Shown here piece after piece: positions 4,331 through 24,053 of a DNA stretch of 64,000 nt. A program made the position numbers and the translations under genes. Positions within the stretch are counted from its first letter, which is position 1, and the number at the start of each line of letters is the position of its first letter. The stretch is from Octopus sinensis. Lineage: Eukaryota. Where the stretch lies: assembly GCF_006345805.1 (NCBI RefSeq), contig NC_043004.1, positions 55,614,001 to 55,678,000 on the forward strand, read 5' to 3'. The notes beneath the pieces are model-generated. The model was not told the origin of the DNA, searched no databases, and saw only the letters and a program-made list of their open reading frames with translations.

Positions 4331-4562
4331 ATTTCTTTACTGCCCACAAGGGGCTAAACACAAAGGGGACAAACAAGGACAGACAAACGGATTAAGTCGA
4401 TTACATCGACCCCAGTGCGTAACTGGTACTTAATTTATCGACCCCGAAAGGATGAAAGGCAAAGTCGACCTCGGCGGAATTTGAACTCAGAACGTAACGG
4501 CAGACGAAATACGGCTACGCATTTCGCCCGGCGTGCTAACGTTTCTGCCAGCTCGCCGCCTT
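4331..4562 (-). mobile_element. SINE family B (Tx1-like 3' tail)
   Basis: Head aaggcggcgagctggcagaa, B-box gagttcaaattcc, tail ttgtcccctttgtgtttagccccttgtgggcagtaaagaaat. Confidence 0.88.
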
Positions 4563-4862
4563 AGTGAGTACATATATAATTTAACTAAAGGTTGTATCAT
4601 AAGTATGGGAGGTTTTTTTTTTTTGTTAATGGGAAAAATGGAAAAATAAGAGCGAATATTTATTTTATGAGTGTTATATTAAGTCTATAAAACTGTGCAT
4701 AAAGTATATAAAGTGTATATATAAAGTGCATTAAGTAGTCATCGTATTCCAATTTCTTTCACTTTTAATAAGTTTCAGATGAGTGACTATTTTTCAATAC
4801 AGACACATAACTGGCAACGCTTTCAGGGGTTTTGGATAAATTTTCAAAAATAGCATAATAGG

Positions 4863-5269
4863 TTTACTCTTTTTACTCTTTTACTTGTTTCAGTCATTTG
4901 ACTGTGGCACTGCCTTTAGTCGAATCAAATCGACCCCAGGACTTATTCTTTGTAAGCCTAGTACTTATTCTATCGGTGTCTTTTGCCGAACCGTTAAGTT
5001 ACGGGGACTTAAATAAACCAGCATCGGTTGCCAAACGACATTGAGGACACACACACACACACACACACACACCACACACACACACATATATATATATACA
5101 TATGTACGACGGGCTTCTTTCAGTTTCCGTCTACCAAATCCAATCACAAGGCTTTGGTCGGTCCGAGGCTATAGTAGAAGACACTTGCCCATGGTGCCAC
5201 GGAGTGGGACTGAACCCGGAACCATGTGGTTCGTAAGCAAGCTACCTATCACACAGCCACTCCTACGCC
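4863..5269 (-). mobile_element. SINE family A (tRNA-like head, internal microsatellite, GAGTAAAA tail)
   Basis: Matches the copies at 26151, 39792, 50556, 53669 and 60160. Confidence 0.85.
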
Positions 5270-6123
5270 TACGTTTACCATTAATTCTGTGAAATATTCA
5301 CGGGTCCTGCTAGTGAGGAAATATTCAACAATTCAGAAGGCTCTAAACCTCTTTTCTTCCACAGAAAATTAATTCATTCTACTATTGAACCTTTTGGCTT
5401 CCACTATTTACCGAGGCTAAGTTGGCATTAAAATGGACACCAATAGTAATAGAAAATCTGGAGAGCTGGTAAACACCTTAAAAGAAACAGCTGAAGAGAA
5501 ATGGATCTTATATGGAGCAAGAAAGACCAGTGTGAACAGCATTGAATCGTCGAAGCCTTATTTCCCAACAGCTAAAGAAAAGCTAATCATAGGTATCACT
5601 CACAAGCGAGTATGACTCGATATTATGTATCATACTTTCACTTAAGGTTTTCGGTGCCTGCGTAGTTACGAGTAAACGCTGACACCCTATCATCGGTTCT
5701 ACCCATCGCCCTCTCAACCCAACAGAATATCTATAATGTGACAACTGAAGAGAGGGCAGGCTGTACCATCAATTGGTTGGTATTTATTTTAGCTAGGTGA
5801 CTGGAGTAATATGAAATGATGGTTCATGTTTAATAACGTAACGCGCCTTCCGATACGGGAATCGAAACGTGAGCAGAAGGAAAAAGAAGAAAAAAGGATG
5901 AAATAAAAATATTATGTGATGACGCAGGCCATCATTAGATTCTCCAGGTTCTATTATTATACAATAAGATACTGGCGGCAAATTGTATTAATTCAACAGT
6001 ATACAAGAATGGGTTACATCAGTAAAAGAAAAAAATTAAAACCATATAATAGTTTCAAATTTTGGCACAAGGCCAGCAATTTTAGGAGAGGGGATAAATC
6101 GATCACATCGACCCCAGTACTCA

Positions 6124-6182
6124 AGGGTTTTAGGGTTAGGGTTAGTGTTAGGGTTTTAGGGTTAGGGTTAGGGTTAGTGTTG
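6124..6182 (+). repeat. Interstitial degenerate (TTAGGG)n tract
   Basis: gggttttagggttagggttagtgttagggttttagggttagggttagggttag at the edge of an unclassified insertion. Confidence 0.8.
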
Positions 6183-6589
6183 GGGAAAAAGTCAAAATTG
6201 AAGAAGTTGGGGGGAAAGGAGGGGGAAACTTTTTCACAATGCTGATTTTTGGCAATTTTCCGGAACCTCCGTATCCGAAAACGGGGATTTTTGGCAAAAA
6301 AATTACAAAAATAAACAAATTTGGGAGAAAATGGTAGTGGTGGTGGTGGAAACTTTCCGAGTATTTTCTCTGACTGTCTAACGATTCCGCCAACCTAACC
6401 TTATTATTTCTAATTTAGGCACATCTAGGAAATTCTGAGAAAAAACTAATGAATTTCATCGACTCCAGTAGTTGACTGGTACTTTATTTTATCGATACTA
6501 AAAGAAATAATGCTAAGTTGGCATCGGCGGAAATTGAGAGAGCATAAAGAGCAGAACAAATATCGAAAAACGTTGTATTCGTTTATACT

Positions 6590-21600: not shown

Positions 21601-21850
21601 AACCTCACCTGTCCTCCCCTTTACACTTCATATTGACATTTCTGTGATAACGATCTCTATTATTCATTTTTTTCTCTCCCCCTCTTTTTTTAACCCCTCC
21701 CTTTTTTTTGTCCTTTTTCTTTCCTTTTACGATCCCTTTTGATCAAAAACAACCACTCCCTTTTTTTTTTTTTTTTACCCCCAAAAGAAAAGCTCTACCT
21801 TGTAATTTGTTCTATCTGTGTGCAGCCCTGTGTGGCTAATAAAGAAACAT
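18661..21850 (+). mobile_element. 5'-truncated Tx1 LINE (copy 1) in (TATC)n
   Basis: Starts in the late EN domain (TDHK) right after (TATC)n 18554-18660. RT with YADD, CCHC, and a 3' UTR ending AATAAAGAAACAT|ATCTATCT. One frameshift near 18825 and stops near 19044, 19177 and at 20205-20207. Confidence 0.92.
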
Positions 21851-22072
21851 ATCTATCTATCTATCTATCTATCTATCTATGGTGTGTATGTGTTCTGACA
21901 CATATCAAAAGATGAAAAGTTAGACAGATCATTGATCATAAGACTTTCAGTGAGAATAGTAGTTTTTCCTTTAATTTATGTAGGATAGGATAATTTTTCC
22001 CGGATTAAATTCTAAAAGAAGGCAGAGCCATCTCTTACGAATTTTGTTGAATTTTCAATATTTAGTGTATCC

Positions 22073-22854
22073 AAGGCGGTGAGCTTTCATCCTTTCGGGG
22101 TCGATTAAATAAGTACCAGTTACGCACTGAGGTCGATGTAATTGATTTAATTCTTTTGTCGGTTCTTGTTTGTCCACTCTGTGTTTAGCCCCCTGTGGGC
22201 AATAAAAAATAAACATTTAGTGTATTCAGAGCTGATAGAATCGTTAGCGCGCCGGGTGAAATGCTTAGCGGTATTTCGTCTGCCGTTATGCCGAGGTCGA
22301 TTTTGCCTTTCATCCTTTCGGGGTCGATTAGATAATTACCAGTTACGCACTGGGGTCGATATAATCGACTTAATCCGTTTGTCTGTCCTTGTTTGTCCTC
22401 TCTGTGTTTAGCCCCTTGTGGATAATAAAGGAATAGGTATTTCATCTACCGTTACGTTCTGAGTTAAAATTCTGCCGAGGTCGTCTTTGCCTTTCGGGGT
22501 CGATTAAATAAGTACCAGTTACGCACTGAGGTCGATGTAATCGACTTAATTCTTTTGTCTGGTCTTGCTTGTCCCCTCTCTGTTTAGCCCCTTGTGGGCA
22601 ATAAAAATAAATATTTAGTGTATCCAGGGTGGTGAGCTGGCAGAAACGTTAGTACGCCGGGCGAAATGCTCAGCAGTATTTCGTCTGTCGTTAGGTTTTG
22701 AGTTCAAATTCCGCCGAAGTCGACTTTGCCTTTCAACCTTTCGAGGTCGATTAAATAAGTACCAGTTATGCATTAGGGTCGATATAATCGACTTAATCCC
22801 TTTGTATGTCCTTGTTTGTCCCCTCTATGTTTAGCCCCCTGTGGGCAATAAATA
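22073..22854 (+). mobile_element. Tandem/nested array of four SINE B units
   Basis: Spacer aatatttagtgtatcc recurs at 22057, 22212, 22610 and 22855. Confidence 0.85.
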
Positions 22855-23732
22855 AATATTTGGTGTATCTTTTAGGTTTTTAGACACTAGATAGTGGCTT
22901 GAGCGAGATCTAGCTCCTACGTCTAGCAGGTCGGAGATGTTCCTTCTTTTTTTACTTAGTGGAATGATGCAGTTGGTATCGTAATGTTAGTTTAAGTATA
23001 CAAGAAGGGAAAACCAAGGTGTTCTGTTTTTTCACCCCAGGTTCACCATGGTCGGGAAGATCTAAAAACAAAGATGATCAAATGCGACCATTCCTAAATA
23101 TTTTCTTTTCATTCTTTTTTTTTTCTTTTTAAGACAATAAGGTGTAATCAAGGGAGATTGTCTGCTATTTCTAGCAGGTCAAATGTCCAGGTCAAATTGG
23201 TTTGTGCTTGCTATTGTTTTGCTTTTGTTTAGTTTAACACCAGCCGTTGCACAACAGATATATATGATTAAAAGTATTCCAGCCATGACTAAACTGTCTT
23301 TTACATAAGTCTAGGCAATCCAGAACCATGTTTTCCGACTTAGCTTCTTTTCAGACGATGGTGTGTCGTTTGGTTGCTGCTTCTAGTATGTCTGTCAACC
23401 AGATATAGCCTTCTTTATTGACACTGTCTCATGGTTAATGTGTCGTGATGTGTCGCAACCGTTATTACTCAGGACTATAACAAGATTAGTAAATCAAATG
23501 ATTATCATAATCAAAAACCAAGGTTGACATGAACTAGTCCTTGACCTCTGACCTCAGCATAATCTCGAGATGTGATAGTAAGTAGGAAGTTAGAAGAGGC
23601 ACAGGATTTCGGTTGATGTTATGAGATATATGAGATATATTTTTATATGTCTATCTATCTATCTATCTATCTATCTATCTATCTATCTATCTATCTATCT
23701 ATCTATCTATCTATCTATCTATCTATCTATCT

Positions 23733-24053
23733 TTCCCCTTTACACCATACATCATAACACTGTGATACACGATCCCTATTGATCGTTTTTTTCCTCTTCC
23801 CCTTTTTCACCCTTTTTTTCTTCTTTTTTTTCATTTCTCTTTTCTTTTGTTCCTTTTCCTTTTTTCTTTTTTTCTTTTTTTTTCTTTATTTTTTGTTCTT
23901 TTTTCCCTTTTACGATCCCTTTTGATCGAAAACCTACGCCACCTTTTTTTTGTTTCTTTTGTTTTTTGTTTTTTTTTCATCCCCCAAAAGAAAAGCTCTA
24001 CCTTGTAACTTGTCCCATCTGTGTTCAGCCCTGTGTGGCCAATAAAGAAACTT
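23733..24053 (+). mobile_element. Tx1 3' UTR fragment (copy 2) in (TATC)n
   Basis: Matches the 3' UTR of copy 3 and ends AATAAAGAAACTT|ATCTATC. Flanked by (TATC)n at 23649-23732 and 24054-24070. Confidence 0.88.

Follow-up and report, generated by a model that had tools for sequence, protein, structure and literature searches.

Does a short interspersed element (SINE) of the octopus genome owe its 3' end, and its mobility, to a long interspersed element (LINE) that lies beside it? The question is raised by a 64,000-nucleotide (nt) stretch of the Octopus sinensis assembly GCF_006345805.1 (contig NC_043004.1, forward strand positions 55,614,001 to 55,678,000; hereafter the window, to which all coordinates refer), where a SINE family, termed SINE B, and a family of L1-type LINEs have similar 3' ends. 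That SINEs share tails with LINEs, and that a stem-loop at the 3' end is recognised, is textbook knowledge. In the window, the SINE B tail was probably taken from the resident Tx1-like LINE lineage, and the LINE that drove SINE B was most likely a close relative in the same genome whose target is different or less strict.

The consensus tails of SINE B and the LINE were identical at 34 of 42 positions in an ungapped alignment, with both sequences at their exact 3' terminus. A preliminary description of the window had reported a shared exact terminus with about 34 of 41 identities, and both termini proved to be true ends. One 3-nt gap (CCTTG---TTTGTCCC...) extended the homology upstream to 50 columns; the LINE consensus then had 40 identities with SINE B, and the subtype found at 24051 and 38128 had 42. 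Local scores of the tails were 28.5–32.5, compared to 8 ± 1.5 for 1000 dinucleotide shuffles (z = 14–16), and the similarity thus lay far beyond chance. When every 42-mer on both strands of the window (128,000 in total) was compared to the SINE B tail, unrelated sequence matched at no more than 25/42, apart from one match of 27/42, and LINE tails matched at 30–36/42. SINE B ended in ...AATAAAGAAAT(A), with the target-site duplication (TSD) immediately after, and the LINE ended in ...AATAAAGAAAC followed by (A/T)(T/C)ATCTATC.... The LINE-homologous stretch (~55 nt) made up all of the region specific to SINE B, which lies 3' of the body common to other SINE families, and the match ran ~40 nt upstream of AATAAA.

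The SINE B set of the window comprised nine copies with tails, 126–245 bp in length and without an open reading frame (ORF); the family length was ~230–245 bp. A SINE B tail pattern allowing up to three mismatches matched six sites (4331-, 6747-, 8595-, 11129-, 22816+, and 49227+), and three further, more diverged tails lay within the array at 22084–22857. Shuffles gave an expectation of 0 matches for this pattern and for the LINE tail pattern given below. The copies were:

4331–4575, minus strand: SINE B copy, the least diverged (Kimura two-parameter distance, K2P, 0.018 to consensus), with the LINE-like tail at 4331–4387 and candidate TSD TATATATGT
6747–6976, minus strand: full-length SINE B copy sitting in an older CORE-SINE, site ...GC|GGTATTT
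8595–8823, minus strand: SINE B copy within another SINE, TSD of 14–16 bp, GGTATTTATTTTAT(CG)
11129–11355, minus strand: SINE B copy, candidate TSD beginning AGATAT
22084–22857, plus strand: four SINE B units head-to-tail (22084–22209, 22229–22434, 22437–22605, and 22628–22857), with the flank ATTTAGTGTATCCA repeated between units
49036–49268, plus strand: SINE B copy

Tail and hairpin (see below) were intact in nine of nine copies, none of which carried poly(A) or any different kind of 3' tail. The TSDs were 9–16 bp and started with GGTATTT (three times), AGATAT, ATTTAG, and TATATA. The head carried a box A-like motif, TGGCAGAAACG, and a box B-like motif, GTTCAAATTCC, and positions ~13–181 of the body recurred in five or more further window SINE families with different tails. 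Judged from its sequence, the organisation of SINE B appears to be of the CORE-SINE type, with a body common to other families of the window. By eye, this body may resemble the MIR core. In the array at 22084–22857 one flank, ATTTAGTGTATCCA, recurred from unit to unit; in an Argonauta contig (L002, 15200–15320) a SINE had entered an older SINE copy precisely where the tail meets CTATAG (tail|CTATAG). Repeated insertion at a TSD-regenerated site is one explanation for the recurring flank in such arrays, and unequal crossing-over is another. An interstitial telomere-like (TTAGGG)n tract (6124–6181, plus strand) directly adjoined the truncated 5' end of a SINE (6054–6123, minus strand).

The LINE family was represented by one full-length and six 5'-truncated copies (0.2–3.2 kb). 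Its tail pattern, again with up to three mismatches, matched at 21807+, 24010+, 28146-, 31228-, 38128-, and 38767-, with a seventh tail at 31804-. The seven copies were:

31804–37948, minus strand: full-length LINE of ~6.1 kb, with 5' untranslated region (UTR), ORF1, ORF2, and a 3' UTR that terminates in ...AATAAAGAAAC; flanked 5' and 3' by (TCTA)n
18660–21848, plus strand: 5'-truncated LINE with reverse transcriptase (RT) and zf-RVT, one in-frame stop, 98% identity to the full-length copy, flanked 5' and 3' by (TCTA)n
28146–31070, minus strand: 5'-truncated LINE, with a TSD of about ATCTATCTAGTTG across the edge between a (TCTA)n array and unique DNA
23734–24051, plus strand: short LINE 3' fragment, whose tail (24010–24051) was the LINE variant nearest to SINE B, 36/42 ungapped
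31228–31770, minus strand: short fragment of the LINE 3' end, located in (TCTA)n
38128–38334, minus strand: short fragment of the LINE 3' end, located in (TCTA)n; fragment and flank occur a second time at 38767–38973
38767–38973, minus strand: second copy of the short 38128–38334 fragment, likewise in (TCTA)n

The last two fragments belonged to a tandem segmental duplication of ~639 bp (38128–38766 and 38767–39405), each unit consisting of a 207-bp LINE 3' fragment plus (TCTA)n, and their 3' 200 nt were identical. Fragments of 200–540 bp from the LINE 3' end had been inserted by themselves, and the 3' end is therefore enough for insertion. K2P distances of SINE B copies to their consensus were 0.018–0.10 (mean 0.068) and those between pairs of LINE copies were 0.017–0.08; the ages of the two families overlapped.

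Within the full-length LINE, ORF1 with a CCHC knuckle occupied 35855–37753 and the apurinic/apyrimidinic endonuclease (APE) 34856–35590, followed by RT and zf-RVT; frameshifts broke ORF2. Pfam matches were Exo_endo_phos, RVT_1, and zf-RVT, and the best PDB matches were the human L1 endonuclease and ORF2p (RT E = 5e-32, vs. 7e-19 for R2). Because it combines APE, RT, and zf-RVT and has the L1 endonuclease and ORF2p as its best solved relatives, the LINE is by its domains a member of the L1 superfamily. The narrower name Tx1, given to it in the preliminary description, has indirect support from the CCHC type of its ORF1, its target specificity, and the literature label. The ORF1 knuckle, CX2CX4HX4C, was RCYTCGSEAHLKKEC and matched Pfam zf-CCHC at 17.8 bits, under the cut-off; a Transposase_22 domain was not found in ORF1 by Pfam, and a protein search with the low-complexity ORF1 gave no match. 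An ORF1 of RRM/zf-CCHC type has been tied to Tx1 (PMC5203782), and octopus L1-like LINEs carry the label L1-Tx1 (PMC13282606, PMC8967140). ORF2 was 70% identical to a protein of GCA_024449705.1, 64% identical to Argonauta hians, and 50% identical to a cuttlefish gene model (a local match over half of the query). An origin from Xenopus, as the name Tx1 might suggest, was ruled out: the closest LINE proteins were from cephalopods, and the GC content of the window was ~37%. No other LINE clade was found encoded in the window when it was searched for rival tail donors.

The shared tail formed a hairpin module consisting of a 4-bp stem, a CUUGU loop, and the terminus AAUAAAGAAAY 11–13 nt further 3'. 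In an alignment of 18 hand-picked tails, one per family or lineage, of which those from a worm-like host had been found with a pattern fixing the two inner stem pairs, the stem was paired in 90.3% of cells, compared to 67% in column shuffles (0 of 500 as high) and 18–47% with the partners slid. Three of the four stem pairs showed changes on both sides, and the stem variants included GCCC/GGGC, GGCC/GGCC, UGCC/GGCA, GGGC/GCCU, and UACC/GGUG. Since the stem covaries, selection on its structure is indicated. A single fixed fold for the full 48-nt tail was rejected, as SINE B and the LINE had no such fold in common, with conservation limited to the 4-bp hairpin. A census of the window with a covariance model, built from the same 18-tail alignment, found 22 module copies at E ≤ 0.0013. 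In total, 21 of these lay at retroposon 3' termini: nine in SINE B, six in the LINE, and six in other SINEs (two of the six outside the 18-tail set).

The remaining module copy lay within the LINE:

37775–37816, minus strand: extra hairpin module within the full-length LINE (5' UTR), UUUUGCCC-CUUGU-GGGCAAAA plus an A-rich segment, with a stem identical to that of SINE B

This hairpin, found in one full-length copy, lay ~40 nt upstream of the ORF1 ATG and was followed by AUUUAAAAGAAA. It was an 8-bp version of the tail hairpin (-13.6 kcal/mol in context) and may be either functional, giving the RNA one hairpin per end, or a tail that was captured.

Related tails were found in sister LINEs from other sources. 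In Argonauta, one LINE (LINE-a) ended in ...CTGTGTCAGCCAGGTGGCTAAGAAAGAAAT and a second (LINE-b), a 5'-truncated copy homologous to the 3' UTR of LINE-a, in ...CTGTGTCGGCCCTTGTGGCTAATAAAGAAAT. A LINE on the JGI contig L003 with 71% amino acid identity ended in ...GGGCCCTTGTGGCCAATAAAAGAAATC|(ATT)n. The sequence GGC-CUUGU-GCC lay near the LINE 3' end in a cuttlefish contig (L129; 42% amino acid identity) and in ERZ21867824 (45%). The latter, an ENA assembly of a separate genome, was used solely for hairpin conservation (loci L005, L006, L127, and L128); it probably comes from a decapodiform cephalopod, because the 3' UTRs of its LINEs and of the L129 cuttlefish LINE were homologous. On its contig ctg122906l (L005/L006), full-length LINE relatives (45% amino acid identity) were repeated in tandem, head to tail, every 6596 bp.

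SINE tails were most similar to the LINE tails of their own genome. The window SINE B tail scored 32.5 to the window LINE vs. 22.5 to Argonauta LINE-b, and Argonauta SINE tails scored 30.5–34.5 to Argonauta LINE-b vs. 21.5–24.5 to the window LINE. Such reciprocal best tails within each genome fit the expectation for SINEs whose tails follow a partner in their own genome. Five of six Argonauta SINEs and the single LINE-b copy had in common a flank starting with CTAT, and two Argonauta SINE TSDs, of 13–15 bp, were resolved.

Terminal homology beyond chance, together with a covarying hairpin kept in sister LINEs, makes a stringent-type partnership with the LINE lineage, in the direction from LINE to SINE, the best reading of these sequences. 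SINE B, a non-autonomous retroposon, would then be composed of a tRNA-like head, a CORE-type body, and a ~55-nt tail from the 3' end of an L1-superfamily LINE. By analogy to UnaL2/UnaSINE1, the LINE reverse transcriptase would recognise the stem-loop on the SINE RNA, target-primed reverse transcription would start there, and the resulting insertions would carry TSDs of 8–16 bp. A resident sister LINE family with a different or looser target most likely supplied the enzyme.

The choice of a sister family follows from the insertion sites. All seven LINE copies were inside (TCTA)n, in a single orientation and with array on both sides, and their 3' junction was constant, AAAC|(A/T)(T/C)ATCTATC. 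The (TCTA)n tracts were:

37949–39255, minus strand: (TCTA)n tract hosting LINE insertions
18454–18661, 23650–23732, and 31071–31226: other (TCTA)n tracts

Each (TCTA)n array of the window adjoined a LINE copy, and the seven insertions of this L1/Tx1-like LINE were nested over 20 kb (18454–39255). The array was the target of insertion, because the TSD of the copy at 28146–31070 (about ATCTATCTAGTTG) spans the array edge. That (TCTA)n was a mere 3' tail made during insertion was rejected: arrays of 80–280 bp also lay 5' of copies, two of these 5' arrays had no LINE upstream, and one TSD crossed the boundary of array and unique DNA. Reported microsatellite targets of LINEs are ACAY, AC, TC, TTC, TAA, and TTCC/TTTC, with (TCTA)n absent from the list (PMC3812793, PMC4494074), and (TCTA)n may be a new target specificity.

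Several observations weigh against the partnership or against the window LINE as partner, or qualify the reading. None of the nine SINE B copies was located in (TCTA)n, compared to seven of seven LINE copies (Fisher p = 8.7e-5; p = 1.3e-3 if only clearly independent events are counted). SINE B TSDs started with GGTATTT, AGATAT, or ATTTAG and not with TATCTATC, and the insertion-site signatures of SINE B and the window LINE thus differed. The stem of the window LINE was one base out of register relative to SINE B and enclosed a 6-nt loop, CUGUGU, and the exact SINE B hairpin (GCCC-CUUGU-GGGC) was at the 3' end of no LINE found. No tRNA was called in the SINE B head by ARAGORN, also in relaxed mode, or by Rfam (E ≤ 1). 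All other CORE-type SINE tails inspected in the window carried the hairpin module, and SINE B is therefore not special in having it. The SINE B sample was nine copies, and the tail donors compared were L1/Tx1-like LINEs; RTE, CR1, and Dong-R4, which are reported in octopus, were not encoded in the window. From the location of zero of nine SINE B copies and seven of seven LINE copies in (TCTA)n, a sister family is the likelier driver than the window family itself. The preliminary description had named this Tx1 family or a sister as the mobilising partner: tail homology and hairpin bear out the link to the lineage, and the first of its two candidates has become the less likely one.

An unlikely alternative to a sister driver is that the window LINE drove SINE B directly and that its own transcript sets its targeting. 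The AAUAAA signal would place cleavage in the downstream (UCUA)n, the read-through 3' end would anneal to the nicked target, and SINE B RNA, which has no such extension, would land elsewhere. Consistent with this, the LINE terminus was 11 nt away from AATAAA and (TCTA)n followed every copy, the window LINE was nearest to SINE B among the LINE tails compared (score 32.5; 42 identities in 50 columns), and the ages of the two families overlapped. The absence of SINE B from (TCTA)n (0/9) and the unlike loop and stem register of the two hairpins speak against it. In addition, the target of target-specific APE-type LINEs is considered to be set mainly by the endonuclease (PMC4494074, PMC3812793).

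Considerably less probable is a relic tail, borrowed from the LINE lineage but with amplification by RTE, CR1, or Dong-R4, or under relaxed recognition. RTE, CR1, and Dong-R4 are abundant and were recently active in O. vulgaris (PMC13282606), and the insertion sites of SINE B were unlike those of the window LINE. Against a relic, tail and hairpin were intact in nine of nine copies and tracked the resident LINE tail within each genome, the covariation of the stem implies selection on structure, and SINE B had no poly(A) or alternative 3' tail. A reversed direction (a LINE that acquired a SINE 3' end) or convergence on an A-rich polyadenylation signal is highly improbable: AATAAA does lie within the shared stretch and a SINE B-type stem was also present in the LINE 5' UTR of one copy, but the match reaches ~40 nt upstream of AATAAA, LINE relatives with as little as 42% amino acid identity had the hairpin at their 3' ends, among them those of cuttlefish, where SINEs are reported to be scarce, and the shuffle z was 14–16.

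The sister-driver reading concerns a module that was not restricted to SINE B. Other SINEs of the window that carried it included:

56109–56600, plus strand: two CORE-SINEs of other families, with the hairpin module in their tails, then (ATT)n

With other stems, e.g., TGGCCTTGTGCCAAAATTTGAAAC, the module ended CORE-type SINEs at 56109–56600 (plus), 61728–61880 (plus), 6583–6744 (minus), 6054–6118 (minus), and 8700–8915 (plus). The (ATT)n after two such copies was also found after the sister LINE on L003 (...GGCCAATAAAAGAAATC|(ATT)n), and these CORE-SINEs and the L003 LINE are possibly a second SINE/LINE pair with a different microsatellite. One window SINE tail, TGGCCTTGTGCCAAA, was much like a decapodiform LINE 3' end, AGGCCTTGTGCCAAATTTG.

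A metagenome scan with a 22-nt tail pattern gave 0 matches. A looser 17-nt pattern gave mainly chance bacterial matches plus ~35 retroposon termini from another invertebrate host. The latter were on ~35 JGI host-associated contigs, represented three to four families, and ended in ...CTACCCTTGTGGTGAATAAAGATGAATATA or ...CTGCCCTTGTGGCGAATAAAGATATATA. They had the CUUGU loop, AAUAAAGA, and covarying stems (UACC/GGUG, UGCC/GGCG, and UACC/GGUA), and no Tx1-like RT adjoined them. Contigs with such termini were:

L012, L016, L018, L024, L029–L031, L033–L035, L037, L043, L044, L050, L055, L061, L065, L069, L071, L075, L080–L084, and others

Two further tandem repeats were noted in the window. A 29-bp repeat at 42405–43011 had 21 copies with 96% matches (unit GGACTGTGTCCTAGAACCCAATTATCCGG). 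A G+C-rich repeat of 62–63 bp was present at two separate loci (51926–52144 and 57692–57909), where it probably belongs to some other repeat.

Among known systems, the closest are the stringent SINE/LINE pairs. In eel, UnaSINE1 and UnaL2 are such a pair with a shared 3' stem-loop, as reportedly described by Kajikawa and Okada in 2002. SINE B and the LINE resemble stringent pairs in having 40–80 nt in common at the exact 3' terminus and a short stem-loop with a conserved loop and covarying stem. They differ in the host, an octopod mollusc, in a LINE that is Tx1-like and microsatellite-targeting, and in a SINE that ends in AAUAAAGAAAY without poly(A) or short 3' repeats. Stringent pairs with a partner in the L1 clade, as here, are maize and sorghum SINEs with LINE1-1_ZM and Chlamydomonas SINEX-3_CR with L1-1_CR (PMC3472496).

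A SINE had been attributed to a Tx1-group LINE before: in crocodilians, SINEU was linked to Tx1-Mar through a shared insertion target (Kojima, 2015; PMC4494074). Tx1 is thus a rare SINE partner, as the preliminary description had supposed, and not a new one. Both systems have a target-specific LINE and head-to-tail and nested arrangements at the target. SINEU elements have heads derived from small nuclear RNA, poly(A) tails, and a shared target, whereas SINE B and its LINE share the tail and not the target. Microsatellite-specific LINEs of the Tx1 group include Kibi in (TC)n, Koshi in (TTC)n, and crocodilian Tx1 in (TTCC)n/(TTTC)n (Kojima and Fujiwara, 2004; PMC4494074; PMC3812793). Like these, the window LINE is an APE-type element found in one microsatellite and one orientation, with 5'-truncated copies and nests. 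Its target, (TCTA)n, and that of its L003 sister, (ATT)n, are not listed for Tx1-group LINEs in the literature searched.

The third comparison is with CORE-SINEs, such as MIR and octopus OR2, which are said to have been described by Gilbert and Labuda and by Ohshima and Okada in 1994. To our knowledge, known CORE-SINE tails come from L2, RTE/Bov-B, or CR1-type LINEs. SINE B appears to resemble CORE-SINEs in its tRNA-like head, conserved central body, and exchangeable LINE-derived tail, and several window families likewise have a common body and differ in the tail alone. The difference is a tail of L1/Tx1 type, which is not among the tail classes named in the literature searched. Octopus SINEs have been annotated as tRNA-Core (PMC8967140, PMC4758252). 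They make up ~11% of the O. vulgaris genome and ~40% of octopus repeats and are mostly “unclassified” (PMC13282606, PMC8967140). No LINE partner of octopus SINEs was stated in the searchable octopus-repeat literature, although an earlier curation in Repbase or Dfam is possible. SINE/LINE tail sharing and a link between Tx1 and SINEs were both known; for an octopod SINE paired with an L1/Tx1-type tail, no report was found.

A wider reading can be put forward tentatively. The module could be a common recognition element of Tx1-like, microsatellite-targeting LINEs across cephalopods, borrowed by all CORE-type families of the very large SINE expansion specific to octopus, with L1/Tx1 rather than RTE elements driving that expansion, with the module or a look-alike in another phylum, and with (TCTA)n and (ATT)n as new targets. 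The covarying 3' hairpin common to SINEs and resident L1/Tx1-type LINEs is a concrete candidate machinery for the octopus SINE expansion, and it would supply a further, protostome example of L1-clade LINEs that recognise 3' ends stringently.

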